Assembly (NCBI RefSeq): GCF_020745735.1
Contig: NC_083426.1
Span: 12,338,001 to 12,402,000 of the forward strand
Direction of reading: 5' to 3'
Length of the DNA stretch: 64,000 nucleotides
Source: Hemiscyllium ocellatum
Taxonomy: Eukaryota
Shown piece by piece: positions 143-35,900 of the stretch. The position numbers and the translations under genes are program-made. The first letter of the stretch is position 1; each line of letters begins with the position of its first letter. The notes under the pieces are model-generated. The model saw nothing but the letters and a program-made list of their open reading frames with translations, made no database searches and was not told where the DNA came from.

Positions 143-469
143 CACTGGTGCTGATTTGTGCCACATAACTGCAGTTCTCCCCTGGTCTGTGTGTGACTGA
201 CACATTAACCATTTCACTGGATTTTTCTCCTTGAGTATTTGAGGCTGTGCAGTAATATTGATGATGTTTCTGTGTGAAGGATTGACAATGTAGATCCAGT
301 TTACTGGTGTTAGAGATCTTTGAAGCTTCAGATGGGGTTCTTTCATACCATGTGTAGTGAATGGGGAGGGATCCCTGGACAGATTCACAGGAGATTGACA
401 CCGAGCTCCCAAAACATGAGGCATTTGGTGGAGATGATAAAAATCTAAGTTCAGGAAGAGACACTGGTT
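143..469 (-). CDS. Gene C exon C2b (gene continues beyond the window start)
   Basis: 327 nt, ccccag acceptor, GTAAGT donor, open frame. Confidence 0.9.
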
Positions 470-649
470 CTGGGGAAAAGAATCAGATATTCAGATACCA
501 CCTGAACAGCGTTCAAATACTTTCTTCTTTCTAACATTTCTAAACTTCTCCATCTCATCCAGGGCTTGTATGGTGGAATATCCTCAACACACCTCCCTCT
601 CCATACCTCTCCGGACTCCAAGTAAAGTGATTTCCCATGTCTACTATTA

Positions 650-1140
650 CAGGTGGTTCTCCTATATTGCTATAGTTGTGTTCCAGTGAAAACTCGCTGA
701 ATATAAATAATGGGGCCTACGGGAAAAGTGGGGTTAGGGCAGACAGGCAAAAAATATCACTCAAGATTGCTCAAAAATCACCCAAAAGTCTAACGCAAAG
801 TATAGCACAGCCTGAATGAAGGTGGAAATCATATTTATTAATGAGACAAAAGTAAATTTAACACAGTGCATTTAAAAATGTCTGAAAGCTGCTCTCTGTG
901 CAGTCCCTCTCACAGAAAGCTGCTCTGTCAGCAGCTGATATCAGTTCATGTGCAGGACAGTGCGGAGACTTTGGCGCGGACATTGCTGTATGTGCTGAAC
1001 GAAGCATGCAAACCCATCCCTGCTGGAAATGTGCGAGTCACAAAGGAGGTAGACATTCTTGAAAATACCATTCCCTAATTCTTCAACAACGTTCTAGTCA
1101 AATCGCGCAGCCGAAGAGCACATTATCCCAGAACTAACTG
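650..1140. mobile_element. Non-autonomous Tc1/mariner (Tigger/pogo-like) MITE, 491 bp
   Basis: TA at both ends. Imperfect TIRs: CAGGTGGTTCTCCTATATTG vs reverse-complemented end CAGTTAGTTCTGGGATAATG. Confidence 0.65.
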
Positions 1141-2533
1141 TATATCGGAACTTAGGAGAACTCTAAATCAGGACAAATGCAATGATGATGGTCATGTGTC
1201 AACATGGAAATCAGAGCCAATATTTTCTCTCAGGAGCAGATCAAAGACTGTAACTGGTTCAGTGTCTGATTTACAAATGGAAAGCTGTCGGACAGAAACT
1301 TACATAAAAATGGAATAAAATAAGACAATAAATTGGCTGATATTTGTTACAAGATTTCTGGCCTTAAACACAGAGTTTAAATATGCTTTGTCCGACTTCA
1401 CTGTGACTGAAAAGGACATTTTAACTCAAACATCCAGAGGGAGGTGGCAAATTGTGTTTCAGGGATTCTGAAATCCAGAAATGCTGGGTAAATGGATATT
1501 GTGCCAGATTTACTGTCTACTTCAGTGTCCCCAGAGCCAATGTCTTTAAGATATAATTTGGGTGAATTTATTGTTTACACTGACTAGAATCCGATCCAAC
1601 ATTCATCAGCCAAATTGGAGTAATGGGTGTGGAGTAACATTTTCCCCTTTATCTCTGCATCAAGAGAGTATCGAGACACACTGGTGACCAGACACATCCT
1701 TAGGACGGTTCCTGAGAGGAACTCACTGGATTCTCCTTTTGGTTACAAGTTCTGCATGTGTTCACCAGAGAGTGTGTAGTGTTTTAGTGATTGTCCTTCA
1801 TGTTAGCTGAAGCAGTAATGCATACTTAATCTGGGTTGATCCTGATTGACTCACAAGAGGCAATTGTGTATCTTAGATGCAACGCAATGAGCTATTCCTT
1901 GATGTGTAATAATCCAATCTGCTGTTTGATCAAATCAAACTGATATTCTCCTTAAGACAGTATGAGGCTATTCTTCCCGAGTGATATCAATGGGCTTGAA
2001 TAATATCAGCAAAGTGGTTGGTAGCAGAAAATTTCCTTAAAATGGCTCTGAATGACCTATTACAGCACATCCCAGAGCCCCATCCCTCTCTCTCTGCACT
2101 GACAGCATGTCCCAGACTGGAACCTGGCTCTTCCCCTTCAGGGAACTTGCTCAGCTCCGAGTGGTGCCCACTGCTGCTGAGGGACCAAAAGTCACATCCC
2201 CATTCACTTCCCTCTGTACTCAGTGTTAAATGACTCTAGGCAGCCATTGAGAATGGAGGTGTAAACTCTCACAATGTTTTAGCTGGTGGTGGGGACAAGG
2301 AGAATAAGAACGACAGCATTCCACTTAATCAAATTTGATGTTTTTAGATCAGTCATCTTGGCCAGGAGGTTCCAATTCTTTTTACGAAGCATTGAGCTAC
2401 CTGCCCCCCAAATGCAAAACCCTTTCACTGTCACGGGGCATCAGGGTACTGGAACTGTCATGTTCTCTCACAGATAAAACATCGATCTTACATCTCAATG
2501 GGGAATAATCAATGATATCACTGAGAGATTTAC

Positions 2534-2842
2534 CATCAGATATTTGCAGCTCTACAGCAGACACTGAAATGAGGCTGGATTGGTCAAAACCACAGCTGTA
2601 CCATCCTGCATCTTCATAACGAAGATCCTCCATAGTAACAGAAAATTTATTTTGTGTCATGTTATCTGTGATCGACATCCTTCCTCGTTGTCCATGATGT
2701 TCACTTGATTTTACTAAAACAGAGCATTGGCGCATCCAAAGTTTCACAGACCATCGTAACCATTGGTCATAGTGACAGTCTATTGTGATCGCTCTTCCCA
2801 AAACTCCTGTTACTTTACTTTTCACCGGCACTACACCTGAAC
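2534..2842 (-). CDS. Gene C exon V2
   Basis: 309 nt, AG/GTAAAT, open frame, V-set motifs. Confidence 0.9.
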
Positions 2843-3764
2843 CTGAAAAGACAATGAATTCATCAAACAGAAAATAGCTTCTCAACACAGTCAGATACTT
2901 TTAATATGAGTTACCACTGAGTACAGAGGAATCCTTCCACTGCATCTACTCAGGCAGTTTGTGGTGAAATCCATCTAATTGTATTAGGGAGACCAGCATT
3001 GCCTCAGAAATGTAACAACCAGTGTGCACTCATTTGCAAAGCTTATTACAGCAGCATTCAATTCTGCCCAGCAACAGGGTTTGTATCAAATAGCCTCAAA
3101 ATTGGGTTGGTCACTCAGCACAGTTTGAGTGTCACTAAGAGGAGTTTAAAAGATTACACACAGCGACTGAGGGTCACTGAATTTTGGAAAAGGCAGAGAG
3201 TAGACTTCTTCTTCAAAGCATTGTTACTAGCATTGTAGTCTTGTGGACAAGGCAACAGAATTGCTTGGCTTCTACAGAGGGGACTATGAGTGAAGCTCAA
3301 AGGCAGTTGTATATGGCTAGGCTGTGTTGGATATGGCCATCAGTGATCTGGAGTAACTCTGAAGGACCCATTAGGCTGAGATCTTTGAGGGTAACACATG
3401 CAATGGTGTCACCACACCGCAGGTAGAGGGGGAACTGACAGAAAGGGAATGGGAGACCACCCAGACAGAGTGAAAACATGAGGCAGGGAGTGCAGGAATA
3501 CACTGCGGCTGCCTTCCTTTCTCATAGATTTTCCCTTTTGAATGCAACTGGGGGAAATGTGTTCTCAGGTGAATGCAGCGAAAGTCACATCCATGGCACC
3601 AGGAATGGTTCAGCTGCCTGATTGTAAGGAGAGAGGGATTTGGACTTTTGAGGTATTGGGTCCAATTCTGGAGAAGATAGAATCTGTCCAAGTTGGACGG
3701 GTCATGAATCAGCAGGATTAAGACCAATACTCTCCAAGGGGCATTTGCTAGTTCTGTGATGTGC

Positions 3765-4010
3765 CACCCTACCACTCCACATTCACCCAGCCTAATGCAC
3801 CTACCCGACAAACTACGGGTGATTTAACATAGTCAATTCACCTGACCTGCATATCATTGGATTGTAGGAAGAAAGCAGAGCACCCTGAGGAAACCCACAA
3901 AGACACAGGGAGAATGTGCAAACTCCACACAGACAGTCACCCGTGTCTCGAAATGAACCCAGGTCCCTGGTGCTGTGAGGCAGCAGTGCTAACCATTGAG
4001 CCACCGTGCC
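3765..4010 (-). mobile_element. HE1-like tRNA-derived SINE
   Basis: Minus strand starts GGCACGGTGGCTCAATGGTTAGCACTGCTGCCTCACAGC (A box), followed by a degenerate B box. Confidence 0.85.
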
Positions 4011-4511
4011 TCTGACATCTTATGTTTCAAGTATTTTCAAGTGTAACTATATTTCATTTAATCGCTTATATATAGAACTTTACTTTCGATATTTGTTTTT
4101 AAAGAGAACTGATCAAGCCAAAATGACTGCAGATGTGAATTCAGTGGAGATGTGGAGGGAGACCTTGGAAATTTGTACAAAACAGTGTGTCACGGAAACT
4201 TCAAAAGGATTGACTTAAATGGAGAAATATACAGAAAAAAAAATGTATTCACCAGCACGGGATGGGTTGGAAGACCATTGTTCTGGACTTTTATTTCAGC
4301 AAGGCTGGACATTTTACTTCTTTATTTTCTAACATTTTGTAACTAAATAAACTGCACCCAGCTACCTTTGTACTTAAGATGTCACTGTAACTGCGACATA
4401 AACCTTTTCCCTGTATTCATTGAAAGTATGTGACGGTAAAACTAATTTATCTGTGGACAGAGTCAAAAATCACACAACGCCAGGTTATAATCCAACAGGT
4501 TTATCTGGAAG

Positions 4512-4546
4512 CACTAGCTTTCAAAGCATTGCCCCTTCATCAGGTG
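4512..4546 (-). ncRNA. Minimal type I hammerhead motif, second family (paralog 46716-46750)
   Basis: CAC-CUGAUGA-A-GGGGC(AAU)GCUUU-GAAA-G-CUA^GUG. Stem I CAC/GUG; stem II mostly G.U pairs. Confidence 0.55.
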
Positions 4547-4923
4547 ATTGTGAGGTTAAGATCATGCTCATAGAATTTATAGCCAAAGGAGCCCAGTATC
4601 ATGGAGATGTGATACAGTAAACAATCTTAGATTAGCATTTTCATCTTTGATAATGGAATGTGCTGGTTTCTGTTCTTTGTTAGGTAAATCCCAGAATTTA
4701 TTTGAAATCACATTCTCAAGATAGCACAGCTTTTTAAACAATAGCCGTGAAGTCTGTGTCCCAGACAAACCCTCTGCATAGTTTTACAGAGTTTTACATG
4801 GATTCATGCAGCAAAATATAATGTAATTCTGGAAAAACAAATTCACCCCAGAAGCTGATATATGTGCATATGGACGCGTGACCGATTGAGTTGCATGTGT
4901 GAGTGTGGATGTGAACCCATATG

Positions 4924-4956
<33 letters not shown>

Positions 4957-5549
4957 AACCGAGAGTTTTGTGCAGTGGGGTCATTTGCTGTGATACTTGA
5001 ACCCTAGGCCCCAGTTGATCTGTAGACAGCCTGTTCTGAAGATCACAGTTTGGTGAACAGCCATTAAATATCCCTGCAGATTGGGAAAAGAATGAGGTTA
5101 CACCTTTTCTTATTCCGAGTGCTGCAGGCCAGTGTTTGTCAAACAAATGAATTTCAATTAACCTGCTCAACGCCAAGAATCTCAATCAACTGCTCAGTGC
5201 TCCAAGTAACATCCACTCTCATGGCTGTAATGTTCTGCAATCCACTCTTATAAACAACTCAGAGTCTCAACATCTTTAAAAAACTTTTATTATTTTCTTT
5301 AGACTCACTTCATACTCTCAATGTCTGTATATGTGTGTTATATTATTAATACTTCGTTTGTTAAGTAAAGAACAAACTCCCTCACTGTTAACGCAAGAAA
5401 GCCCAGTTAATTGACTCCTCTTAGAACATAAACACATATGGTTTGGGAGAAAGGTAACCACAAAATAGAGAATACATTGTATTCTATTAATGCACAGAAG
5501 AAATCAAAACAAACAAACTGCAATTCTTGAAGCAGAAAGTATTATTTAC

Positions 5550-5870
5550 CTCGGCTCCCAATCTGTGCCAGGAAAATGCAGTTCCTCTCTGATCTGTGGA
5601 CGATTGTCACTTTAACCATTTCACTGTATTGTTCTCCCTGAGTGTTTGAGGCTATGCAGTAATATTGATGATCTTGCTGTTTGAATAATTGACAATGTAG
5701 ATCCAGTATATTGTTCTCAGAAATCTTTGAACCTACAGATCGGATCCTTTCATACCATGTGTACCGAATGGGAAAGGATCCCTGGACAGACTCACAGGAG
5801 ACAGAAACTAGATTCTCAAAGCACCAGATATTTGGTGTTAAAAATCTAATTTCAGGGACAGACACAGGTT
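5550..5870 (-). CDS. Gene C exon C2a
   Basis: 321 nt, AG/GT, open frame, C2 cysteine and tryptophan motifs. Confidence 0.9.
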
Positions 5871-6581
5871 CTGTGGGAAAGAAACAAATGATCAGATACT
5901 CACTGAGGATCCAAAAATCAAATAATCTGTAAATTTCAACATTTCTATCTTTTCATCCAAGTATTTTCATGTTGGAATGTCCACAGAGCCATGCCGATAT
6001 CAACTTAATATTGCATTAATTGAGAAATTAACAGACTGTAATTGATCCTCCAGAACACTTTAGGATATATTTAAGTGATCACTTAAAGTGCCAGACCATA
6101 CAAGGCTCTAGGCAAAGTACTGGAACATGGGATCACGGTAGATAGATGCTTGTTAACCAGCACAGACATGATGGGACAGAGGTTCTCTCAGCGTGCTGTT
6201 GTACTCTATGTCTCTAAAATGGATGTCGACAGGATTGGCTGGCTTCCAGAAATTCTGAGAACTGCTGTATTGCTCCCAAACTTTGTGATACTGCAACCAA
6301 CCATGACCAACTTTAGTTTTTTGGAGCAGGATGACTAGAGGATGGTTTATTTTGGATGTACATCAAAGCCATGAGAAAGAACTAATTAAAGCCCTTGATG
6401 TAAAAGAACTTTTGGGATAAATGATCAGAATATGAGAGAATTATATGTTATGTCAGGAAGTGAGGTATTTCAAGCCGAAACAAGGTAAAATTAGGAAAAT
6501 TATGAAAGAGAGAAACACAAATTGGCTGAGTTGGATTAGAAAAAAGTGAAGAATGTAGATATTGGAGATCAGAGTGGAAGA

Positions 6582-6738
6582 GTGTGGTGCTGGAAAAGCA
6601 CAGCCAGTCAGGCAGCATCCACGGAACAGGAGGATTGACGTTTCAGGCATTAATCCTGATGAAAGGCTTAGGCCCGAAACATCGATTCTCTTGCTTCTTG
6701 AATGCTGCCTGACTGGCTGTGCTTTTCCAGCACCACAC
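6582..6738. repeat. Palindromic Penelope-derived repeat (paralog 48939-49095)
   Basis: GTGTGGTGCTGGAAAAGCACAGCCAGTCAGGCAGCAT and its reverse complement. Confidence 0.85.
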
Positions 6739-6769
6739 GCTTCGAGTCTGCGCTGGATTACAGAAGTAT

Positions 6770-7370
6770 ATTCAAAGGCAGGATTATGGGTTGTGAGAAA
6801 GATATAAAACATCTTGAGGAGGATTTGGATACACTTAACGATTGGGCAGGACTTTGGTCAATGCAATATGGTGTGGAGAAATGAGAAGTTGTCCACTTTG
6901 GTCGCAAAAACTGATGTGCAGTGTCTTCTTCAAATGGTGAGATGTTGGAAAGTACGGCTGTGCAAAGACACTTGGATGCTCTTGTCTATCAGATACTGAA
7001 GGTTAACATGCTAGTGCAGCAAGTTATGAGGAAGGCTAATAGATTATCAACATTTAATACAAGAGGATTTGAGGGCAAGATTTGAGAATTGATGCTTCAG
7101 ATGTTGTGTAGGGTCTTGGTTAGACCACACCTGAAGTATTTTTTGCAGTTTTGATCACTTGATCTCAGAAAAGATAAAACTGCCATAGAAGGAGTGCATC
7201 ATAGCTTCACCAGATCTTTTGTTGTATACTTAAAGTAGATGGTGATACATTTTTGATCATTAATAGGAGGAGGAGTTAAGTGTGGCTGAATGTATTGAAG
7301 TGTTCAATCAGCCATAATCATAGTAAAGTGTGAGGCAGGCTCAACAGCCTGTTGGCCTCCTCCTGTTCCT
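6770..7370 (+). mobile_element. Old CR1 LINE 3' fragment (paralog ~49135-49730)
   Basis: [15 protein letters not shown]-terminal region, frameshifted. Confidence 0.75.
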
Positions 7371-7501
7371 ATGTTCCTACCAACAAGTATCAGCATTGCT
7401 GGGGCACCTTGGGATATTGGAGCGTTCATGGTTCGTCCCAGATAAAACATTGATCAGACATTTCAGTAGAGATTAATCAAGGAAATCAATGAGAAATGTA
7501 C

Positions 7502-7822
7502 CATCAGATACTTCAAGCTTTACGGCACATAATTGATCACTATCTTGTTTATCAATACCACAGCTGTACCATCCTGCATCTTCCCTGCGAAGATCCTCCA
7601 TGGTCACAACAAATACTCCTTGTGCCTCGTAATCCTTGATTGATATTCTTCCTCGCTGTCCGCCTGGATCAGTTGTTCTCACTAAATATGAGCATTGTAT
7701 AGTCCATCCAAGACACCAGTATTTCATGTTGGGCTTGAACGGTGAGTTGTATCGACAATTTATTGTGATTGATCTTCCCACAATTCCTGTTACTTTCGTG
7801 TTTGTCCACAGAAATGATGAAA
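7502..7822 (-). CDS. Gene C exon V1, CD300/pIgR-type V domain
   Basis: 321 nt, [24 protein letters not shown]. Confidence 0.92.
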
Positions 7823-8506
7823 CTGGGGAAATAATGTTTCAGAAATTGAACAAGAATGAAATTCTTAATACAAATAAATATAACTCAGTATGTTGTGCCC
7901 CTGTAAAGAGGGGAAACTTCACTATATCTGTGACAAATATATGACGATATATGTTAGATATTCAGTTGGCACAACATCGAGGGTTAAAGGGCCTGTACTG
8001 GGCTGGAATGTTCGATGTTCTGTGTTGGGGAGTACAATCTGGAATGATAAGGCAGAAGTGGGATCTTCAGCCCATTGAGAAGGTCATGGCTGATCTGGCT
8101 GTGTTCTGAATTTCACTTTCCCATTCATCCCTGATTGCATTTGAATCCTGCAACTATATGGACCCTAAACCTTTTGATTACTTGGATTGGGACAGAAAAT
8201 TTGGACAAAAAGTTATGGTTATTTCTGCAGCGTTTAATTTTATGGTCATGCAATTTAAAAATTATTTATGTGTCTGCATAAACATAGTGGATAGTTTATC
8301 AAAACACAGTCAAAAAACCCAATTTCTGTAATGCAAGTGGAATTATATTTAAAAAAAAGGTTGTCATTAAACTCATTGTATGTTTTAATGTCATTACATG
8401 ATTACCATAAACAAAATGCAAACATAAGGATTTTCAAAGTAATTTTTGATGTAAAATGGTAATGGCTCTGAATGATATATTTTCAATCTTCTTTGTGGGG
8501 AACTAT

Positions 8507-8806
8507 GATTAGATTACTTACCGTGTGGAAACAGGCCTCTCGGCCCAACAAGTCCACACTGACCCACTGAAGTGCAACCCACCCAGACCCATTCCCCTAC
8601 ATCCAACATTATGGGCAATTTAGTATGGTCAATTCATCTAACCTGCACATCTTTGGATTGTGGGAGGAAACCAGAGCACCCGGAGGAAACCCACGCAGAC
8701 ATGGAGAGAATGTGCAAACTCCAAACAGAGAGTCGCTTGAGGCGGGAATTGAACCCGGGTCTCTGGCGCTGTGAGGCAGCAGTGCTAACCACTGTGCCAC
8801 CGTGCC
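8507..8806 (-). mobile_element. HE1-like SINE
   Basis: tRNA-like head with A/B boxes and TAATCTAATC tail. Confidence 0.9.
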
Positions 8807-9959
8807 GATGAAAGGCATCTGTACATATATGTGTGTAAACATAATGTATACGAATCATTTTTAGTGATTGGATTTCAAATGGTTGGCATTTGGGTGTTGG
8901 TCACTCTTGTGACATAGTTATTGACAGGGTTATAAAAGACAACGTCAGAGTGATCTTTCCAGAATAATGATCCAATCCACACATGTCAAAGAGCAGAGAG
9001 GAGTCTGCATACCTTCTGGAGTGTTAATAGATTATTGTTGATGCTGTGGAGTTTACGACAGGGTGGATAAATATTGAAAGGCTCTTGCTTGCTTTTGATT
9101 CAAATAATTATTGATTTACTTTAGCTCAGAAAAATGCAGTCAGTCAAATCTTTTGGGGCAGGATTTGGTGAGGACCGTCATGGTGTCAAAGGCAAATATA
9201 TTTTCTCAACTAAATTGCAAAGTACAGTTACCTCAATGTCAAGTCTTAATTTGAAAAATTTCCAGGCCTGAATTACATCAAACTTTGTTTTATCTGGCAC
9301 CTATTAGAGCAGAGTATACTGGCTGACCAAATTTTCCAGGTGATCATGAGGTCTATATAATCAATGTAAACACACACACTAAGAAATCAGACCATAACAC
9401 AGGAGTGACAATACAGTAAACTTACAGTATTTGAGGTATATAACTTTGGGTGGTCTATTCAGAGTGCTGTTTCACAGCAGATAGCTAAACTTACTTTATT
9501 TTTATCTTTTTTGTTCTTCCGTGTAATAAAGAAAGATGCAACAACAAAATACATTGGCCGGCTCCAAATTTAAGGATCACCACATTTAACTAAATTAACA
9601 ATATTGCCAGAAAACAAAATATTTGAGGGAAATCACTGAACTCCAGAATTGTGACTTGGATTCTTGATCAGAACAATTCGGGTCTCTTTGCCTATGTTTT
9701 CCACCCATGACATTTCTGCAGAATTATCTGTCTTGGTGATGGATTTTGTGAATTAATGTTTGTGTGTTTTGGGATTAACATTTAATAAACTCCTTCAGGG
9801 CTATCCCCTTAAAATTTTCCTTTCCAGGAGGAATGCATGTGTTCTGAGGATTCTGGAATATCACTTTGACTGTCTGCAGCTGCTTCCGTACTGACCTATC
9901 TCCAGTTCCCTTCAGCTCGATCAGCTTTCAGGTCCACACAGTTGCCTTTTGTTGGAGGT

Positions 9960-10440
9960 TTAGGGGACAGCAAAGGTTACCTCAGAGAACAATGGAATCT
10001 TGTTTGGATGGGTCAATGGGATGAGGAATGTTTTCCCTCAAGTGGCAAAGGCTGAGGGGTGACCTTATAAAGGTTTATGAAATCATGAGGGCTATGGATA
10101 GGGTAAATAGACATGGTCATTTCCCTGGGGCGGTGGATTCCAGAACTGCAGAGCATAGGTTTAGGTTGAGAGGGGAAAAATTTAGAAAGGAACTAAGAGG
10201 GAACTTTTCCATACAGAAGTGCGTGCATGGAATAAGCTGCCAGGGAAGTGATGGACACTGGTACAATTACGGCATTTAAAAGACATCAGACTGAGTATAT
10301 GAATATGTAGGGTTTAGAGGGATATGGGCCAAGTGCTGGCAAATGGGATGAGATTAGGTTAGGATATCTAGTCAGCATGGGCAAGTTGGTCTAAAGTGTC
10401 TGCTTCCGTGCTGTACATCTTTGTGACTCTGTGACTCTCT
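9960..10440 (+). mobile_element. CR1 3' end
   Basis: [13 protein letters not shown] motif and CR1-type 3' tail. Confidence 0.85.
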
Positions 10441-10814
10441 ATGGGGCTTGCACAGGAAAGAGGAGTCGAGAGAGATCAGCCACAATGTTGTTCAGAGATG
10501 GAACTGCCATGAAGAGCCTCCAACACAAATTTCACTGAAGCTAAAATCATTACATTAATTTGGAGTGGATGTAAATGCAATAAATTTACATGTTTGAGCT
10601 AAAGAATGAAAGGAAAACAATACCTTACTGATAGAGCACTGTGTATAAAATGTGTGCGATTGAGGAGCAGTGACATTGACAGAGCCTCAATATTTCAGCA
10701 GCAGAACAGAAACAATTACAAACTCAGGGACTGTTCCCTTAGAGGCTTCATTACCACTGCAGCCTTCAGTTTCTATTGGATAGCAAATTGCATGCAAAAG
10801 TTCACTTTTAGAGT

Positions 10815-12990
10815 CATAGAGTCATAGAGATGTACAGCACGGAAACAGACCTTTCAGTCCAACCCGTCCATACCAACCGGATATCCCAACCCAATCTCGT
10901 CCCACCTGCCAGCACCCAGCCCATATCCCTCCATACCCTTCCTATTCATATACCCATCCAAATGCATCTTAAATGTTGCAATTGTACCAGCATCTACCAC
11001 AGCCTCTGGCAGCTCATTCCATACAAATATCACCCTCTGTATGAAAAGGTTGCCCTGTAAGTCTCTTTTATATCTTTCCTCTCTTACCCTAAACCTATGC
11101 CCTCTAGTTCTGGACTCCCCGAGCCCAGGGAAAAGACTTTCCCTATTTACCCTATCCATGACCCTCATAATTTTGTAAACATCCATAAGATCATCTCTAG
11201 CCAACAATGTTACAGAGAAAACAACTCCAGCCTGTTCAGACTCTCCCTATAGCTCAAATGCTCCAACCCTGGCAACATCCTTACAAATCTTTTCTGAACC
11301 CTTTCAAATTTCACAACATCTTTCTGATAGGAAGGAGGCAAGAATTGCACGTAATATTCCAACAGTAGCCTAACCAATGTCCTGTATAGCCGCAACACGA
11401 TCTCCCAACTCCTGTACTCAATACTCTGACCAATAAAGGAAAGCATACCAAACGCCTTCTTCACTATCCTATCTACCTGTGACTCCATTTTCAAGGAGCT
11501 ACGACCTGTACTCCAAAGTCTCTTTGTTCAGCAACAATCCCGAGGACCTTACCATGAAGTGCGTAAGCCCTGCTAAGATTTGCTTTCCCAAAATGCAGCA
11601 CCTCGCATTTATCTGAATTAAACTCCATCTGCCACTTCTCAGCCCATTGGCCATCTGGTCAAGATCCTGTTATAATCTGAGGTAACCCTCTTCGCTATCC
11701 ATTACACCTCCAATTTTGGTGTCATCGGCAAACTTACTAACTGTACCTCTTATTCTCGCATCCAAACCATATGTGAATGATAAAAAATAAAGGACCCAGC
11801 ACTGATCCTTGTGGCACTCCACTGGTAACAGTCCTCCAATCTGAAAAAAGACCCTCCACCACCACCTTCTACCTTTCAGCCAGTTCTGTATCCAGATAGC
11901 TAGTTATCCCTGTATTCCATGGGATCTAACCTTGCTAATCAGTCTCCCATGGGGAACCTTGTCAAACGCCTTACTGAAGTCCATATCGATCATATCTACC
12001 ACTCTGCCCTCATCAATCCTCTTTGTTACTTCTTCAAAAAACTGAATCAAGTTTGTGAGACATGATTTCCCATGCACAAAGCCATGTTGATGATCCCAAA
12101 TCAGTCCTTCCCTTTCCAAATACATGTACATCCTGTCCCTCAGGATTCCCTCCAACAATGTGCCCACCATCGAAGTCAGGCTCACTGGTCTATATTTCCC
12201 TGGCTTGTCCTCACCACCCTTCTTAAACTGTGGCACCATGTTAGCCAACCTCCAGTGTTCCAGCACTTCACCTGTGACTATCGATGATACAAGTATCTCA
12301 GCAAGAGGCCCAGCAATCACTTCTCTAGCTACCCACAGAGTTCTCGGGTACACCTGATCAGGTCCTGGGGATTTATCCACCTTTATCCATTTCAAGACAT
12401 CCAGCACCTCTCCCTCTGTAATCTGGACATTTTGCAAGATGTCACCATCTATTTCCCTGCAGACTATATCTTCCATATCCCTTGCAAAATATTCATTTAG
12501 TATCTCCCCCATTTTCCGTGGCTCCACACAAAGGCCGCCTTGCTGAGCTTTGATGGGCCCTATTCTCTCCCCAGTTACCCTTTTGTCCTTAATGTTTTTG
12601 TAAAAACTCTTTGGATTCTCCTTAACCCTATTTGCCAAAGCTATCTCATGACCCCTTTTTGCCCTCCTAATTTCCCTCTTAAGTATACTCTTACCTCTTT
12701 TATACTCTTCTAAGGATCCACTCGATCTATGCTGTCTACATCTTACATATGCTTTCTTATTTTTCTTCACCAAACCCTCAATTTCACTAGCCATCCAGCA
12801 TTCCCTGTACCTACCAGCCTTACCTTTCACCCTGACAGGAATATACATTCTCTGGATTCTCATTATCTCATTTCTGAAGGCCTCCTATTTTCCAGCCGTC
12901 CTTTTACCTGCGAACATCTGCCCCCAATCAGCTTTCGAAAGTTCTTGCTTAATACCATCAAAATTGGCCTTTCTCCAAATTTTAACAGAT
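10815..12990 (-). mobile_element. 5'-truncated CR1 LINE with RT fragments
   Basis: ORF 11904-12863 (KSPGPD, YRPVSLTS, QHGF, DFSKAFDKVPH), later ORF2 frames and (CTATGA)-type tail. Confidence 0.95.
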
Positions 12991-13614
12991 TAAATATATT
13001 ATTCCTGCATTTCTTTTATGTTGCTCACAACTCTTGTAAAAAATGAAGCAGGAGCCTACATTTGATGTTCAACATGAATAATGTGCATTAGTATATTTTG
13101 GTAAGTATTTTTGAGATTGAATAGGATACACAAAGTAGGTATAAGACTTCATTCAAAAAATTTCTCCGGAGTATTCTATGCCTATATGTGTCTCTGAGTA
13201 TTGAACCATCACTGCTGAACAAGACATAAACGAGATGTGTCTCTACACTGACAATCCAACACTCCAGTTCTGGCTGTCACTCACTGGGCAGTGAATAAAT
13301 GAATAGAATTAGACTCCCCATTCTCCTTGTTAGCTGCAGATATTCTTGCAACAGAAAGCACAGCTCGCTATCTGCCTGTGTGTTTCCTTGGAGATCATTG
13401 TTACCAGGAGGGTGTTGCATGGTTTGCAGAAGTAGTTACTGACACCATGCAATGTGATGGTCAGCCTGCGATGCTTTATATCCTGTCAATTCTTGAAAAC
13501 ATAATTGAATAATACTGCTGAAAAAATAAATTATGAATGAATAAAGGCAGTGTCTGCTAACAGTGGGAATGCAGGACAATGTGAGTGCACACTCACTCAG
13601 GAAGGTGCATGCAC

Positions 13615-13990
13615 ATAGTACCAGACCCTGCACGGTGTTGTGTCATGTCCAGTTCCACACCCTGCATGGTGTTGTGTTATGTACAGTTCCAGACTCTGCA
13701 CACTGTTGGATCATGTACAGTTCCACACCATGCACGATGTTGTATCATGTACAGTTCCACACCATGCACGATGTAATATCATGTACAGTTCCAGACCTTG
13801 AACACTGTTGTGTCATGTACAGTTCCAATCCCTGCACAGTGTTGTGTCGTGTACAGTTCCAGTCCCTGCACAGTGTTGTGTCATGTCCAGTTCCACATCT
13901 TGCATGGTGTTGTCATGTACAGTTCCACACCCTGCATGGTGTTGTGTCATATACAGTTCCACACCCTGCACGGTGTTGTATCATGTAATG
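13615..13990. repeat. 34-bp minisatellite, ~11 copies
   Basis: Unit CATGTACAGTTCCACACCCTGCACAGTGTTGTGT. Confidence 0.95.
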
Positions 13991-14339
13991 TTCTGGAATG
14001 TGAAAGTGCACAGACCAGGTGTCACATCAAAATCGGAATAGACGGCAAATGTGGGAGAAGTAGAAAGAATGGACAGGGTCTGGCCAACCCTAGTCTGACT
14101 GAAACCCTCCCTCATTACCTCCAGGCCCAATCCCATACCCCAACTCCCCAGATCAATGCTCTTTCTCTCCCTGAGGATATTTATTTCCTCTCTACCTATG
14201 GAGTCTCAGGCTGAAGAGTGACCATCTCTATATATCTGCTATCCACAATACTCACCATCTCCTGGCTGCTTCACATTGTCTACTGGCATCACTCCTGCTC
14301 TGAAATCCAGACAGCCAGGATATGCTGTGGGAGATACTT

Positions 14340-14578
14340 CCTACACACTGATTGGTCCCAGGAGATAACTCTCCTCCTGACACTCCACAATTTGAGTTGC
14401 ACAAGTCAGGACTATGATGGGAAGCTCTCCGCTTCCCTGGATGGGTGCAGCTCCAACAATACTGAAGCCATTTGATACATTCCAGGACAAAGTTGCCCAC
14501 TTGTTTGGCACCATTTCCACAATCTTAAACAGTCTATCCTCAACATACAGTGACACCAATGTGTACCATCTTCAAGAT
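14340..14578 (+). mobile_element. Second LINE family (CR1/L2 group) 3' ORF2 fragment; longer copy at ~56075-56600
   Basis: [22 protein letters not shown], typical of the ORF2 C-terminal region. Confidence 0.65.
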
Positions 14579-15559
14579 GTCTGTCTGAATCCCCTTTAAC
14601 ACCGTACCCACAAGAGATGTTTGGATCTTCAATCCAAAGTTCCCAGGTATTTCCGTACGGCCTTTCTTAAATAATTGTCCAAGATTAGCCACACTCCAAC
14701 CCCTCGGCACTCCACCCACGGCTATCGCTGACACAAATATCTGTGCTAGGGGCCCCACAATTTCCTCCCAGGCCTACCAAGTGGCCTTGGGATAGACTTC
14801 ATAAGACCCTGGGGATTTATCTACCTTAATGTGTTTTAAGATGTCAGGAACCTCCTCTTCTGTAACGTATACTCTCTTTCACACCGTTGAAAGAACTATG
14901 TGGTAATCGATTGGGAAATGTAATTATCTGAGCTGGACAAGAAGAATTACATTGTATAGGGTACAGAGAGGGATATCATTTACTGAAGGATGCTCAAAAA
15001 ATTTTGTAAATGAATATTCTGAGCTTTAGGTTTTACATCACAACACAATGTTAAGTTTACTGATTGGAGTAAGTTGGATGTGAGTGCAAGTTGTGAGGAA
15101 GAAACAAAGAATCTGCAAAGAGATTTAGACAGTTACAGTGAGTGAATAACAAGTTGGGAACTTTAATGTTGATTGTTTTAAAACAGGTTGTTTATAAATG
15201 AATGTGAGATTGAAATATTGAACAATAATTTTGTTGCAGTGCTACATTACAATGTTAAATTTGATGGAAATGAAAGAGTGTAAGCAACTTGGTTAAAGCA
15301 CAAGACTGAAAGGAAAAAGGTTTCTTAAGCAAAGAGAAATCTGTATCAATCGTCTACTTTTGCAACTGACCCTCACAAAACATCATTGTCCTGTAAAAAA
15401 AGGAATAATCACAAATTCAAGATTTTGTCAACGTGTGACAAGATCTCCCTTTCTGCTTTTACAGGTTGATAAACATTGAAGCATCTCTCCTGTTCAAACC
15501 AGACAGTGCACTTCAACAAACATTGATTGTCTTAATGTACAACTGGGATGGTCACTCAC

Positions 15560-15599
15560 CAGGAATGGAACAAATGAGGAGAATTAAAATCCACATCAT
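15560..15599 (-). CDS. Gene C signal-peptide exon [13 protein letters not shown]
   Basis: Same as the 59019-59058 paralog, with GTGAGT donor. Confidence 0.85.
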
Positions 15600-15790
15600 T
15601 TTATTCAAAAGATCAGCTCAGTTCTTGATGTCAGTCTCTCAGCTCTTGTTTCTCACATTGTGGTAAGTGTGAACAGCAATTTCTACAAGAAGTTAAATGA
15701 GGAAGAAGATATAGGAAGCCAGATTCTGAAACTACAGGAAGCTAGAGGGGGTGAACTGACCCTGAAGGAGCAGTTTCCTCTCAGTTATAT
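15600..15790 (-). promoter_or_regulatory. Putative proximal promoter/5'UTR of gene C with RUNX (TGTGGT 15659-15664) and several ETS (GGAA) cores; paralogs ~59060-59250 and ~27322-27510
   Basis: Directly upstream of the ATG and conserved among paralogs. Motif calls only, no functional data. Confidence 0.4.
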
Positions 15791-16299
15791 TTAAAAGAAG
15801 AACTAAATTAACTTTCATTAAATGAATAGAGAATCCTGAAATCAAAATGATGAAGGAATCAGATGCTATCGGCAATGGTGACCCAAGCTCATTATTTATC
15901 CTGAATTAGAATTAGAATTCAGTTTTATTGTCATGTGTGCTCAAGTACAAAAGTACAGGGGTCCACTGAAAAGTGTATGATGTTGCCATGCATAGTGTCA
16001 TCTTAGGGACAAAGTGTATCATTACAAAACTCAGGGACTAAAATAGATTAGTTCCAAAAAGAGGGAAGTAAAGAAAAAAGCTAAAAGCTCTACACGACAG
16101 TTCTTCATTGTATATGTTAGGGAAATAGAGAGATAAAGTTAAAAGATAGCTATTACAGTCCTTCTATAGCCTGCAGTCGCTCCATGCTGGGGGATTTCCA
16201 CACGTGTTCTCTCTCAAGCTATCTCTCTCTCCTCAGACTGAGCTGATTCCAATCAGACAAGAAAGATGCTGACCATCATCTGTGACACACTCCCTGCTC

Positions 16300-16680: not shown

Positions 16681-16872
16681 TTGGCTGCTGCCACACTCTG
16701 ATGTTGTCACCACCACTAACTCCACAAGGTGAGTTAGAAAACCTGTAAATAATTAAGAAGAGAAGATCGAGAAACGGGAAAAAAGGTGAGAAGCGGCTGA
16801 ACAGGGCGAGCCCAGGGCTGAGTCTAGAATCTCGACAAAAGTGAGGACTGCAGATGCTGGAAAACAAAGTCT

Positions 16873-17052
16873 AGATTAGAGTGGGGCTGGAAAAGCACAG
16901 CCAGTCGGGCAGCATCAGAGGAGCAGGAAAATCGATGTTTCGGGCCAAAGCCTAGCGTCAATCCTGATGAGGGGCTTTTGTCTGAAACGTCGATTTTCCT
17001 GCTCCTCGGACGCTGCCTGACCGGCTGGGCTTTTCCAGCCCCACTCTAATCT
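16873..17052. repeat. Palindromic head-to-head Penelope-derived repeat (paralog 60419-60598)
   Basis: Long inverted arms (AGATTAGAGTGGGGCTGGAAAAGC...GCTTTTCCAGCCCCACTCTAATCT). Confidence 0.85.
16960..16995 (+). ncRNA. Minimal type I hammerhead ribozyme motif
   Basis: AAUC-CUGAUGA-G-GGGC(UUUU)GUCU-GAAA-C-GUC^GAUU. Stem I AAUC/GAUU; palindromic ACGU stem III. Confidence 0.7.
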
Positions 17053-17759
17053 CGACACTGGGCCTAGAATCTGCCAACTCCATTGCCACCATTTTCCCAT
17101 TCTCAGATGAACACCAACTGACTCATTCTCCAGTGTCAGAAACTTTCAACAAACAGTTTTTAACAAATAGAAATTTCTTTTGTGAAAATTACTACTGCAA
17201 TTCAATGCAGGATTTTTATTAATATTTTGCTTTTAGGCCAAATGATTCTGATGTAGGTGCTGAATAATTATTGTGTCAGGATCTAATCTCCTAGATGTGC
17301 AGGAGTAGGGCATACTCTGTTCCATTTCCACAAGATCCAAGTAAACAAGTCTTGGGGTTGATTTTAGGCAGAGAAAGGAATTCAACAACAGAGAGAAAAT
17401 TCTTTCAAACATGAACTGTGATTGAGTAACTGGGAGTGAGCTTCAGTTCCAAGGTGAGGATCCCTTTGGTGAACCGACGGACATGGGGCTTTGTATTCAC
17501 CAGGACATGGTTGATGATGAGTGAGTCTGGTGAACCATGCTGGGTTTCACCTTTGAGAAGATCAAAGGGACTGACACCCTTCACCAACCGTGCTCATCCC
17601 CAGCCACAATGCTGAAGGCAGTGCCCCCACCTTAACCCTTAATATGGGAGGAGAGTCACTGGAGTCATTACCCAGAGACTGAACCTGTAAAGTAACTTGC
17701 TCAGTGTCAAAGCCATATCCTAGTAGACGGTCACTCAGCAGTTTTTAAAAGACCGTTCT

Positions 17760-18130
17760 TCTGAGACAAACAATTGCAGGACCTGGAGCTGCCACAAAGC
17801 CCCTCCCCCATTCGGATGGATGTCCCATTTGCTCTGGAATGGTGCAGTGATCCACCCACAACATGGACATGAGCCTGTCCCAGGAGGTTTCCTTCCCAGT
17901 GATTGTGATCAATGGGCTGGGTCTGAAAACTCTCAGTGCAGCCTTGAATGACCCAGAGTGTGCCACCCACAATATCCTGTTGATTAACACTGACTGGGCT
18001 CTAAGAAAACTGTCCCCACCCTGCCTTTCCAGAAAGCCTCTCCACTGAACATTTCTGTCAGTGGCTGTGCAAACGTGGCTGCAGACATATTGCTCCAGGT
18101 GACACAGTTCTCCGTCTTTCCTGAGCTGTA
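17760..18130 (+). pseudogene. Degenerate NLR-type leucine-rich-repeat fragment
   Basis: SQEVSFPVIVINGLGLKTLSAALNDPECATHNILL matches, from memory and without gaps, the RI-like LRR pattern of fish/shark NLRs (QELxLxxNxLGDSGVKLxSAALxNPEC). Stops and frameshifts flank it. Confidence 0.55.
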
Positions 18131-18814
18131 GACAATGGGTGCCAGGAGGGTGTTACAGTGCCTGCAGGTATGGGTTGTGGTTTCACAATGGGCTTTCCCA
18201 CAGACTCTGGGGTTTTACTAGTGACAGAGGAGGCCAATCCCAAGTGTCTACTCAGCTTTTTGAAAGCCTGTGGAAGAGTTGTGTAATGTCCCTGCTGTCG
18301 CAGTTAGTGACATATTCCTGAACTCCTGAGCTATTTGTCACACAGTTCCTGGACAATATAAAATGCTCAGTGCTGAAGGAACTTTAGGAACAGTTTACAG
18401 CACAGTTTAATTGATAACTCTTCTTCTGGTCCTTTGGAATCTCCCCTGTAGATTAATCGATAAAGCTTCTCTCCCCTTTCAGCTGTCCTCTTTGTGATTC
18501 ATAACCTACATCTCACACAGGCCGGACCCTGATACATCTGTCCACTGTTTGTTCTATCCACATCCAACAATGTCCTTCAAATGGACCAGGACTTACAACA
18601 TTAGCCTCCAGCGAGTGCTGTACCAGGGCAGCTCTCTCTCCAATTTGCAGACAAAAGTAACTCTCACTTACTCTCATTGTACATCTATGACTATCTATCA
18701 CACATCCCCCTTGATAATATTCACACTTTTTTCTGATAGTGTCAAAAGACAATGACCATCAAAATATGCAACAAACGTAGACACTTTTTTTTTACACCCC
18801 ACTCTCTCAAAAAT

Positions 18815-21483: not shown

Positions 21484-21574
21484 CTCATGTTTTCGTGTAA
21501 GTATTGTGACTGAAACAGAACAAATCACCAGGAGAGTGAAGAGTACCCAGCGCATCACATCCCAGGCAATGTAA
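21484..21574 (-). CDS. Second TM exon [30 protein letters not shown] (orphan or alternative)
   Basis: 91-nt paralog of 32835-32925 with intact acceptor and GTGAGC donor. GAG (Glu) stands where the other copy has TAG. Confidence 0.75.
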
Positions 21575-21653
21575 CTGTGTAAAACAGAAGAAATACAAAA
21601 TCATTTAAAGGAAACAACGCCGCTTCATACTTCAAGCATATATTCCTTTGAAA

Positions 21654-27281: not shown

Positions 27282-27321
27282 CGGGAATGGAACAGATGAG
27301 GAGAATCAAAGTCCACATCAT
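27282..27321 (-). pseudogene. Orphan leader exon [13 protein letters not shown] (gene B shell)
   Basis: Paralog of the two other leaders, with GTGAAT donor and a homologous upstream region. No Ig exon was found between it and the next TM exon. Confidence 0.7.
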
Positions 27322-32925: not shown

Positions 32926-35900
32926 CTGTGTAAAACAGAAGAAATACAAAATCATTTGAAGGAAACAAGACTGCTTGATGTTTCAAACATTTATCCTCTG
33001 TTTACACTGCAGTATAGAGTCATAGAGATGTACAGCATGGAAACAGATCCTTCTGTCCAACCTGTCCTTGCCGACCAGATATCCCAACCCTATCTAGTCC
33101 CACCTGCCAGCATCCGGCCCATATCCCTCCAAACCCTTCATATTCATATCCCCATCCTAATGCCTCTTAAATGCTGCAATTGTACCAGTCTCCACCACTT
33201 CCTCTGGCAGCTCATTCCATACACTTACCACCCTCTGTGTGGAAAGATTGCCCCTGAGGTCTCTTTAATATCTTTCCCCTCTCACCCTAAACCTATGTCC
33301 TCTAGTTCTGGACTCCCCTATCCCCGGGAAAAGACTTTGTCTATTTATCCTATCCATGCCCTTCATAATTTTGTAAACCTCTATAAGGTCACCACTCAGC
33401 CTCCAACGCTCCAGGGAGTACAGCCACAGCCTGTTCAACCTCTCCCTATAACTCAAATCCTCCAACCCTGGCAACATCCTCGTAAATCCTTTCTGAATCC
33501 TTTCAAGTTTCACAACATCTTTCCGATAGAAAGGAGACCAGAATTGCACGCAATACTCCGACAGTGGAATTGGAGGTGTGGAGGACAGTGAAGAGGCTTC
33601 CAGAAATTACAACAGGATCTAGACCAGATGGGCCAATGGGCTGAGAAGTGGCAGATGGAGTTTAATTCAGATAAATGTGAGGTGCTGCATTTTGGGAAAG
33701 CAAATCTTAGCAGGACTTATCCACTTAATGGTAAGGTCCTTGGGAATGTTGCTGAACGAAGAGACCTTGGAGTGCAGGTTCAAAGCCCCTTGAAAGTGGA
33801 GTCACAGGTAGATAGGATAGTGAAGAAGGCATTTGGTATGCTTTCCTTTATTGGTCAGAGTATTGTGTAGAGGAGTTGAGATGTCATGTTGCGGTTGTAC
33901 AGGACATTGGTATATTGTAGCAAAGTAAAGCAGCACAGCTCAGTGAGTTATGTGGGAAAATTAAATTTCAGTTTAATTTATTACTGACTTGAACAACAGA
34001 TAACTGGGAACTGAGGCATGAACCATTTCACTGGGTTTTGTTCCCTGAGTATTTGAGGCTGTGCAGTAATATTGATGATGTTGTTGTGTGAAGGATTGAC
34101 AATGTAGCTCCAGTTTGTTGGTGTCAGAGATCATTGAATCTTGTGTTGGGGTCTTCTCAGACCATGTGATGTGAATGAGGAGGAATCCTCGGGCAGACTC
34201 ACAGGAGATTGTGACTAAACCCCCAGAGCATGAGACATTTGGTTGTGATTAAAATTGAAGTTCAGGAAACTTTCCTTTTTGGGAAATAAACATTTATTAG
34301 AAAACTGACTATATTGGAAAAGCCAGAAACCACTAACACTTTTCCCTTCATTATCCCATTCACTGTCATAGACTCATATGACACAGAAATAGTCCCTGCA
34401 GTTTAATACATCCGCGATGAACAAGTTTCTCAAAAAAACCAGTCCCACTTGTTTGCATTTGGCGCGTTCCCTCCAAGTCTTTCCTATTTATGTACTGATC
34501 CAAATGTCTTTTTAATCTTGCAACTGCCCCTTCATCTCCCATGTCCTCTGGCAGCTCATTCCACATATGAGCCACTCTCTCAGTGAGAATGTTGCCTCTC
34601 AGGTTCATTTCACATTTTTCTCCTCTCACCATGAAAACATGACCCCTCACCTTGAACTCTCCCAGCTTCGTGAAAACAACCTTTGCTAAACACCTTATCT
34701 AGATCTCTCATGATTTTATAATCCCCGATAAAGTCACCTCCCAACCTCCTCCGCTCCAGGGGAAAACGTCCCAGCCTATCCCTATCACTCAAACCCTCCA
34801 GTCACAGCAACATCTTAGGAAATCTTCGGTGAATCTTAGTAAATCTTCAATTTAATAATAATCTTCCTGAAGCAGGTTGATTCAAACTGTGCACAGTAAT
34901 CCAAAAGTGGCCTCACCATCATTCTGTACAGGTGCAGCGTGAGGTTCCAACTCCGACACTCAGTGGTCTGAGAAATGATTGTAAACATGCTCAGTACCTT
35001 CTGAACCACCCTGTCTATCTCTGGTGCAAATTTTTAAAGATCCCCTGGGTCTCTCTGTTCGATAGCATTACCCAGGCCCTACTTTTAATTGTATTAGTCC
35101 TGTCCTTGTTTGTTTTACCAAAAGGCTATACCTCACATTGATCCAAATTAAAATCCATCTGCCAATCCCCAGTCCATAGGATCAATTGATCAAGATCCCT
35201 TTGCAATCATAGATAACTTTTGTCACTGACAACAATACCACCAATTTTGGTGCCATCCACGAACTTACTAACCATGTCTTCTAATTTCTCATTCAAATTA
35301 TTTGTATAAATTACACTGATCCCTGCAGAACACCACTGATCACAGGCCTCCAATCCAAACAAATGACCCTCCACCACCCTCTGTCTCCTGCCATCAAGCT
35401 AATTTTGATTTAGTTGGCAAGCTCACCCTGAATCCCATGTGATCTAACTTTATGACTCAGTCTCCCATGTGGAACCTTGTTCCTAAAGTCCATATGGACA
35501 ACATCTACTGCTCTACTCTCGCAACATTTTTGGCTCCATTCTCAAAACCCTCAATCAAGTTTAGAACGCACAATTTCCCACATGCTATCCCGAATCAGTT
35601 CTTGCCTCTCTAAATGCCTGTAAATCAGATCTCTCAAAATCGCCTTCAACAACTTACCCACCACTGATGTCAGACTCAGATCTGTAATTTTGGTTAGAGT
35701 AGTGCAGGAAAAGCACAGCTGGTCAGGCAGCATCCGAGGAGCAGGAAAATCGACGTTCAGGCAAAAGCCCTTCATCAGGAATAGAGGCAGGATTCCTCCA
35801 GGGTGGAAAGATAAATGGGGGGGGGTGGGACTGGGGAGAAGGTAGCAAATATTACAATAGGTGAATGGGGATGGGGATGGAGGTGATAGGTCAGAGAAGA

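Follow-up and report, generated by a model that had tools for sequence, protein, structure and literature searches.

The locus analyzed here raises the question of how a receptor ectodomain came to alternate V-type and C2-type immunoglobulin (Ig) domains twice over and to which receptor family such a gene belongs. The analyzed stretch of DNA, hereafter the window, comprises 64,000 nt of the epaulette shark (Hemiscyllium ocellatum) genome and contains two full four-exon copies of the gene, termed gene A and gene B, as well as relics. Gene B lies on the minus strand. Its leader exon, encoding the signal peptide, occupies 15560–15599 and runs from the ATG to a phase-1 GT donor. Downstream follow four Ig exons, Va (7502–7822, 321 nt) and C2a (5550–5870, 321 nt), forming module 1, and Vb (2534–2842, 309 nt) and C2b (143–469, 327 nt), forming module 2. 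All four have lengths that are multiples of three, are of phase 1/1 and carry an AG acceptor and a GT donor, the gene running out of the window past the C2b donor at 142. Sequence comparisons indicate that this stretch very probably represents the 5′ two thirds of a gene of the modular domain immune-type receptor (MDIR) family, with an ectodomain that would consist of a doubled V-intron-C2 unit.

Exons were joined on the basis of splice signals, reading frame, conservation and Gnomon (RefSeq) models. The leader and the four Ig exons translate into the first 439 residues of RefSeq XP_060701343.1 (H. ocellatum), with all in-window exons identical. This RefSeq model ends, outside the window, after the stalk exon and without a membrane span; gene B could, thus, be secreted or truncated, or the model could be incomplete. 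A search of positions 4000–16000 against Rfam gave no match.

Both V exons were assigned by Pfam to the V-set (E of 3e-12 for Va and 1e-11 for Vb), while C2a and C2b matched the C2-like models Ig_3, Ig_2 and Ig_C17orf99. Structures in the PDB that matched Va comprised pIgR, CD300/CLM-1, NKp44 and TREM, with V-domain E values of 5e-44 for pIgR and 2e-17 for CLM-1; the V domains are of the same type as those of mammalian CD300 (CMRF35-like) proteins and pIgR. The C2 domains are FcR-like, with FCRL5, FCRL4 and CD22 as the closest solved structures: C2b matched FCRL5 (E of 9e-39, over four stretches), FCRL4 and domains d6–d7 of CD22, and C2a additionally encodes a Cys-containing linker strand. Va keeps the extra Cys pair of the CD300 type, whereas a 4-residue deletion in Vb removes the first Cys of this extra disulfide. 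An AlphaFold model of Vb-C2b reached a pLDDT of 87.9, and its V domain superposed on CD300lf with an rmsd of 2.2 at 31% identity. Except for this CD300lf match of the V domain, a Foldseek search of the PDB with the two-domain model returned generic tandem-Ig matches only.

Similarity between the two modules extends beyond the exons into the intron that separates V from C2. Over ~100 nt following the V donors, the conserved start of this intron in module 1 (7401–7501, minus strand) and in module 2 (2434–2533, minus strand) showed 79% identity and a local-alignment score of 71, the mean after shuffling being 18 (z of 22); for the Va 3′ and Vb 3′ flanks, z was 25.5 with 200-nt and 22.4 with 300-nt flanks. 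Likewise, ~115 nt preceding the C2 acceptors, at 5871–5986 in module 1 and 470–586 in module 2 (both minus strand), aligned with a score of 42 versus 18.5 (z of 9.8, and 9.7 for the C2a 5′ and C2b 5′ flanks in a second comparison). No similarity was detected between the Va 5′ and Vb 5′ flanks (z of 0.9) or between the C2a 3′ and C2b 3′ flanks (z of −0.7). Outside the exons and shared flanks, the ~5-kb units, with a module start-to-start distance of 4968–5407 nt, did not align, and the remainder consists of repeats and unique sequence.

Comparison of introns beyond the species drew on one single-module locus of Chiloscyllium punctatum. The interval 7401–7501 resembles the same intron end in this V-C2 gene (z of 17.8), 5871–5986 aligns with its matching intron end (z of 10.6) and the C2b 3′ flank (1–142) resembles its C2-to-stalk intron (z of 13). 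The Va 5′ and C2b 3′ flanks matched only the outer introns of this gene, and the Vb 5′ and C2a 3′ flanks had no match in the flank matrix, these outer introns included. The pattern fits a duplication in which the internal intron travelled with the V-C2 unit, and it indicates which intron ends moved with the copied unit. An earlier sequence-only reading had described the four-domain ectodomain as two copies of V-intron-C2, and the shared V 3′ and C2 5′ intron flanks bear this out.

The ancestor would have been a leader-V-C2-stalk-transmembrane (TM) gene, within which the V-intron-C2 unit was tandemly duplicated. Recognizable ends of the inner, V-to-C2 intron would have been retained in both copies, while Va alone would still have the leader-side flank and C2b alone the stalk-side flank. 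The intron between C2a and Vb (2843–5549, minus strand), which contains a SINE-like repeat, a (GT)n run and a multi-copy repeat, would represent the junction made by the duplication. The locus would then offer a clean example of how Ig-superfamily immune receptors lengthen by copying of phase-1 exon pairs.

It is possible, although we regard it as rather unlikely, that the two modules share intron flanks not as mere remnants of the duplication but because these were held alike, either by selection, for instance on the splicing of phase-1 exons that can be skipped, or by gene conversion between the two modules. At about 21% (K of about 0.25), the flanks have diverged less than the V exons at synonymous sites (0.66) and about as much as the C2 exons (0.37). 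Moreover, the paralogous single-module gene of another species (C. punctatum) has conserved these intron ends, and a gene A isoform in RefSeq skips the exon corresponding to Vb (Vb′). However, the exonic modules 1 and 2 stay cleanly apart across three shark orders, which argues against recent exon conversion, and, as sharks evolve slowly, exon-proximal neutral sequence may simply persist. Selection or conversion acting on the flanks would, in any case, modify the duplication reading rather than replace it.

A further route, which we consider improbable, involves no intragenic duplication: two neighboring V-C2 genes with one module each would have fused, the upstream one losing its stalk, TM and tail exons and the downstream one its leader through a deletion or read-through. 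Such genes are densely arrayed in tandem at the locus, two Chiloscyllium gene models (P0151 and P0161) extend across neighboring genes and a fusion route has also been proposed for the D1a-D2a-D1b-D2b DICP of bowfin. That the Vb 5′ and C2a 3′ flanks are unlike either outer intron is allowed by fusion and by intragenic duplication alike. Against fusion, relics of leader, stalk, TM and tail exons were sought in the 2.7-kb C2a-to-Vb intron of both paralogues, with positions 3891–3942 masked or skipped in the intron searches, and none was found; the sole match (4454–4545) was rejected as an exon relic, being a multi-copy repeat with further copies, in both orientations, in the rest of the window. 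In addition, in a set of 74 shark V domains drawn from 41 proteins, no complete protein starts with a Vb-type domain. Since relics would have decayed, however, intragenic duplication and fusion of two neighboring V-C2 genes cannot be told apart.

The doubling of the V-C2 unit is old. In the module tree, modules 1 and 2 each grouped with the matching lamniform modules (support values of 98/99 and 95/83), and an AU test rejected a hemiscylliid-only origin of the doubling (p of 0.012). The 4-residue deletion and Cys loss of the Vb type are common to Orectolobiformes, Lamniformes and Carcharhiniformes and occur in internal V domains only; this shared deletion would place the module doubling before the split of the three orders. 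Synonymous divergence (dS) amounts to 0.66 between Va and Vb, 0.37 between C2a and C2b and 0.047 between genes A and B. Tandem V-C2 duplication had been put forward as the source of this particular receptor: the doubling itself stands, but it is not peculiar to this gene, the event being ancient and the modules grouping with lamniform counterparts. Shark and batoid modules formed separate clades, and an AU test rejected a clade uniting module 2 of sharks with that of batoids (p of 7e-4, for a group picked after the tree had been seen). These data suggest that the V-C2-V-C2 layouts of sharks and rays were either reached separately or homogenized within each lineage and, as the separate clades are open to both interpretations, the tree gives a minimum age only.

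As to family affiliation, cartilaginous fish possess type I immune receptors termed MDIRs, reportedly described in skate by Cannon and colleagues in 2006 (Immunogenetics 58:362). Their ectodomains contain a variable number of Ig domains of two types, one resembling those of pIgR, CD300 and TREM and the other those of FcR homologues. MDIR genes repeat a two-exon module, in which one exon encodes a V domain of pIgR/CD300 type and the next an FcR-like C2 domain. Gene B aligned end to end with skate MDIR5 (ABC86800.1), with 49% identity over 446 collinear residues (E of 2e-143), and a closely related paralogue (P0002) matched skate MDIR3, MDIR5 and MDIR2 with E values of 4.5e-146, 1.8e-122 and 4.5e-59, respectively. 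In a database search with the same paralogue, the strong matches were all chondrichthyan, and the best non-chondrichthyan match was mammalian pIgR with only 24% identity. The elephant-shark ‘modular domain immune-type receptor 2’ also belongs to the family. Gene B combines three features expected of an MDIR: homology to named skate members, both Ig domain types and a location in a multigene cluster. Among 95 family proteins, V-C-V-C and V-C layouts were equally frequent (27 each), three V-C modules were present in 13 and the overall range extended from V-C up to five or six modules. RefSeq labels of the members vary between ‘pIgR-like’, ‘Fc receptor-like 5’ and ‘CXADR-like’, an inconsistency that conceals a single family, MDIR.

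The sequence-only reading held that alternation of V and C2 fits neither CD300 nor pIgR. This is correct for both: CD300 proteins have one V domain followed by stalk and TM and lack C2 domains, whereas gene B has four Ig exons, two of them of C2 type, and pIgR, which binds polymeric Ig, has an ectodomain of V-type domains only, whereas in gene B these alternate with C2. FCRLs, with C2-only ectodomains that lack a pIgR/CD300-type V domain, likewise differ from gene B, which carries V-set domains at positions 1 and 3. The reading overlooked, however, the MDIR family, of which MDIR5 is V-C2-V-C2; the architecture is that of an annotated family, skate MDIR5 being collinear and the gene being present in RefSeq as XP_060701343.1. 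An undescribed architecture beyond all known families, to which the mismatch with CD300 (one V), pIgR (V only) and FCRL (C2 only) and the inconsistent RefSeq naming might point, has virtually no plausibility, as homology to three named skate proteins (MDIR2, MDIR3 and MDIR5) and to MDIR2 of the elephant shark is clear, and MDIR5 has its domains in the same order, V-C2-V-C2, and an Arg-bearing membrane span homologous to that of gene A. Judged by its sequence, gene B belongs to a known family, is already listed in RefSeq and does not represent a new receptor type.

Skate MDIR5 (Raja/Rostroraja eglanteria) resembles gene B in its leader-V-C2-V-C2-stalk organization and gene A in its homologous Arg-bearing TM, and skate MDIRs, like the shark genes, form multigene clusters with variable module number. 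Skate V2 retains four residues and one Cys that are absent from shark Vb. In bony fish, DICPs with D1a-D2a-D1b-D2b layout are similar to MDIRs in that two alternating Ig domain types are doubled as a pair, with duplication or fusion of modules suggested as the origin, and in that activating (TM Arg), inhibitory and secreted forms occur in tandem clusters. DICPs have been reported in teleosts, holosteans and coelacanth; their comparison with MDIRs covered the architecture.

The single-family identity is relevant to surveys of Fc or polymeric Ig receptors in cartilaginous fish. A 2014 survey (PMC4016189) reported no shark homologues of pIgR, FcRL or classical FcR. Because MDIRs pair a V type of the pIgR/Fc-alpha-mu-receptor kind with an FcR-like C2 type, and because pIgR, FcRL and classical FcR homologues went unreported in sharks, the conserved four-domain galeomorph MDIRs might conceivably be the cartilaginous-fish functional counterpart of an immunoglobulin (polymeric IgM/J-chain) receptor, a highly speculative assignment. 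If true, the doubled V-C2 unit would provide the multidomain binding surface that pIgR makes from V domains alone.

Gene A, the tandem paralogue (32835–59058, minus strand), encodes exactly XP_060701340.1 (495 aa). Its exons, all on the minus strand, are the leader (59058–59019), Va′ (50175–49855), C2a′ (48227–47907), Vb′ (44906–44598), C2b′ (42547–42221), the stalk (39545–39467) and an Arg-bearing TM exon (32925–32835) that terminates in TAG. Direct splicing of C2b to the TM exon was rejected for incompatible phases, which the stalk exon bridges, and a C2-like exon at 34009–34269 was rejected as a fifth domain for its in-frame stop and missing donor. The Ig exons of genes A and B share 91–95% protein identity, and positions 1–20457 and 42078–63999 of the window share 90–96% nucleotide identity; the whole gene was copied again much later than its modules (dS of about 0.05), within a 42-kb tandem segmental duplication that yielded genes A and B. 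For Va, the two genes differ with a dN/dS of 1.37, a value from just 10 versus 2 changes that we discounted as evidence of selection. The gene A membrane span carries one Arg and one Asp and is followed by a 4-residue tail. Given this Arg and the short tail, gene A would be of the activating type and should signal through an ITAM adaptor. We infer both the cell type and the signaling mode of what would be a leukocyte surface receptor. MDIRs comprise activating forms with a charged TM, inhibitory forms with an ITIM and forms with neither motif. A Chiloscyllium relative (P0151) features an uncharged TM and ITIM-like tyrosines.

The exon structure, domain types and family of the minus-strand gene under study (gene B) were established, together with two rounds of duplication. 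Its leader exon (15599..15560, 40 nt) codes for a signal peptide, with a phase-1 donor at its end. Four Ig exons lie further along the same strand: Va (7822..7502, 321 nt) and C2a (5870..5550, 321 nt), forming module 1, and Vb (2842..2534, 309 nt) and C2b (469..143, 327 nt), forming module 2. All are divisible by three in length, in phase 1/1 and bounded by an AG acceptor and a GT donor. Joined, the five predicted exons yield a stop-free translation of 439 residues identical to residues 1–439 of RefSeq XP_060701343.1 (H. ocellatum, assembly GCA_020745735.1), named ‘polymeric immunoglobulin receptor-like’. Gene B exits the window past C2b, beyond which the RefSeq model has only a 27-residue stalk.

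Pfam classified Va and Vb as V-set (E values of 3e-12 and 1e-11) and C2a and C2b as Ig_3, Ig_2 or Ig_C17orf99. The solved structures nearest to Va were pIgR (5e-44), CD300/CLM-1 (2e-17), NKp44, the Fc-mu receptor and TREM, and those nearest to C2b were FCRL5 (9e-39), FCRL4 and CD22 d6–d7. A confident AlphaFold model of Vb-C2b (pLDDT 87.9), with 59 family modules as input, predicted V and C2 domains plus a short additional strand from a Cys-containing linker; its V half superposed on CD300lf with an rmsd of 2.2.

A phmmer scan with C2b against 1.84 billion representatives retrieved proteins with one, two, three and up to six copies of the domain, in which mapped V and C2 profiles formed regular V-C2 repeats. 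Names among the matches included ‘modular domain immune-type receptor 2’ from Callorhinchus and MDIR2, MDIR3 and MDIR5 from clearnose skate, MDIRs being the modular domain immune-type receptors of cartilaginous fish. Strong matches were chondrichthyan throughout, the next being mammalian pIgR at 24% identity. Gene B aligned with MDIR5 (ABC86800.1) across 446 collinear residues (49% identity, E = 2e-143). Both are V-C2-V-C2, and the Arg-bearing membrane span of MDIR5 resembles that of gene A, the tandem paralogue in the window. The sequence-only reading had taken this architecture as new, fitting neither CD300 nor pIgR; the novelty was not borne out, as the gene is already modeled in RefSeq and MDIR5 shares the layout collinearly. 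The single V-C2 relatives for which it had proposed a search do exist: among 95 family proteins examined, 27 were V-C and 27 V-C-V-C, while 13 had three modules. A 2006 MDIR paper reportedly described one to six Ig domains belonging to four subfamilies, and receptor forms that are activating, inhibitory or motif-less. Bony-fish DICPs show a D1a-D2a-D1b-D2b doubling (bioRxiv 10.1101/2021.06.11.448072) and resemble gene B in this doubled layout, the comparison being one of architecture.

Within gene B, a repeat finder and self-BLAST each paired V with V and C2 with C2 exons, at spacings of 4968–5407 nt, as the proposed self-comparison had anticipated. Flanks were compared using intron sequence only, with local scores set against shuffles. 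The initial ~100 nt downstream of the V donors were 79% identical (score 71 versus a shuffle mean of 18, z = 22), and the final ~115 nt upstream of the C2 acceptors were alignable with few gaps (z = 9.8). The claim of shared V 3′ flanks (2400–2534 and 7400–7500) and C2 5′ flanks (470–600 and 5870–5990) was, therefore, right, coordinates included, on intron sequence alone. Between modules, neither the V 5′ flanks (z = 0.9) nor the C2 3′ flanks (z = −0.7) aligned, so that exactly both ends of the module-internal intron are shared.

The ancestral layout was taken from a Chiloscyllium punctatum gene with a single V-C2 module (locus L001). For the end of its leader-to-V intron, the sole match was the flank upstream of Va (z = 7); for the start of its C2-to-stalk intron, it was the flank downstream of C2b (z = 13). 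Its inner intron ends matched those of the gene B modules (z = 7–18); the C2a-to-Vb intron flanks had no match in the same comparison. This pattern is what would be predicted if a V-intron-C2 unit had been tandemly copied inside a leader-V-C2-stalk gene, giving the V-C2-V-C2 ectodomain. The four-domain gene may instead have arisen by fusion of two neighboring genes; no leader, stalk or TM relics survive in the inter-module (C2a-to-Vb) intron, which was searched with positions 3891–3942 masked. The flank pattern relative to L001 supports the tandem duplication of a ~5-kb V-C2 unit put forward earlier, with the event itself dated as ancient. Because the L001 matches show intron ends to be conserved across the family, these ends are not markers of a recent event.

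Protein identity was 50% for Va/Vb and 64% for C2a/C2b, with synonymous divergences of 0.66 and 0.37. Maximum-likelihood analysis of 67 V+C2 modules placed module 1 from Hemiscyllium, Chiloscyllium, Rhincodon, Carcharodon, Cetorhinus and Scyliorhinus in one clade (support 98/99), and hemiscylliid module 2 grouped with module 2 of two lamniforms (95/83). Constraining hemiscylliid modules 1 and 2 to one clade was 53 log-likelihood units worse (AU p = 0.012). Moreover, Vb has a 4-residue deletion that removes the first Cys of the extra disulfide typical of CD300/pIgR V domains and leaves one unpaired Cys. The deletion, confined to internal V domains save in one partial model, occurs in Hemiscyllium, Chiloscyllium, Rhincodon, Carcharodon, Cetorhinus and Mustelus, representing three shark orders. 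Given the cross-order module clades and the shared deletion, the doubling predates the divergence of three galeomorph orders.

With elephant-shark MDIR2 serving as the outgroup, shark and batoid modules fell into distinct clades, and joining module 2 of both lineages, a group named after the tree was seen, was rejected (AU p = 7e-4). On these grounds, the skate and shark V-C2-V-C2 layouts are either independent or homogenized in each lineage. Young module pairs were also seen in several other lineages, namely Heptranchias, Scyliorhinus (proteins P0186 and P0196), C. punctatum (P0180) and Mustelus (P0163), and may reflect either recent copying of modules or the merging of gene models.

The second round of duplication is a ~42-kb tandem segmental duplication carrying a whole MDIR gene (1–20457 versus 42078–63999, 90–96% nucleotide identity). 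The upstream copy, gene A (59058 to 32835, minus strand), has seven exons whose translation is exactly XP_060701340.1 (495 aa): leader, four Ig, stalk (phase 1 to 2) and TM (phase 2, TAG at its end). Its membrane span contains one Asp and one Arg, followed by a 4-residue tail. An Arg-bearing span with a very short tail is a hallmark of adaptor-coupled activating receptors. Every Ig exon being in phase 1/1, in-frame skipping of any is permitted, including the module 2 V exon Vb′ (44598–44906), omitted from RefSeq isoform X2 of gene A (XP_060701342.1, 392 aa) to give V-C2-C2. Genes A and B differ by a dS of 0.047 and a dN of 0.033, so that the module doubling is ~8 to 14 times older than their split. 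Va (7502–7822) and its gene A counterpart (49855–50175) have the highest dN/dS of the four exons (1.37), with 10 nonsynonymous and 2 synonymous changes, counts too few to call selection. Relative to gene A, gene B Va has an additional Cys near the domain end.

The region comprising the TM exon and the promoter side is present in a third, partial copy at 27631–32994, which resembles 17101–21643 at 77–95% identity. Three more features separate gene A from gene B. A C2-type pseudo-exon (34269..34009, minus) has an in-frame TAA, lacks a donor and shares 83% protein identity with the third-module C2 of Chiloscyllium relatives. No V exon partner was found within the window, and the pseudo-exon looks like what is left of a third module, or of a gene, that has since been lost. 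A third leader exon (27321..27282, minus) has no Ig exons downstream and is followed by a second Arg-bearing TM exon copy (21574..21484, minus), with GAG and a donor where gene A has TAG; the two would represent either a gene emptied of its Ig exons or a TM/tail cassette kept in reserve. The Hemiscyllium RefSeq model XP_060700982.1 (P0002) ends in an off-frame reading of the TM exon region that starts at an internal acceptor and runs through the donor, and, therefore, has no membrane span; its C terminus is likely a modeling artifact or a soluble isoform.

By analogy with paired Ig-superfamily receptors (CD300, TREM, KIR and DICP), the protein would be a type I leukocyte surface receptor binding ligand through its membrane-distal V domain. 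The doubled module would lengthen the ectodomain and add a second, divergent V surface, and forms with an Arg-bearing span would rely for signaling on an adaptor resembling DAP12 or FcR-gamma.

Repeats were also present in the window. An inverted repeat at 6570–6750 (79-nt arms, 85% complementary, 23-nt loop), with kin at 16834–17044, 48927–49107 and 60383–60593, looks like a MITE-type element. A SINE-like repeat of ~230 nt occurs at 3784–4015, 8580–8811 and at least six other sites, in both orientations and with copies 70–87% identical. Lastly, a 319-aa ORF at 11904–12863 (minus), with related fragments at 22.6–23.6, 34.5–37.6 and 52.6–54 kb, resembles the N-terminal portion of a LINE reverse transcriptase.
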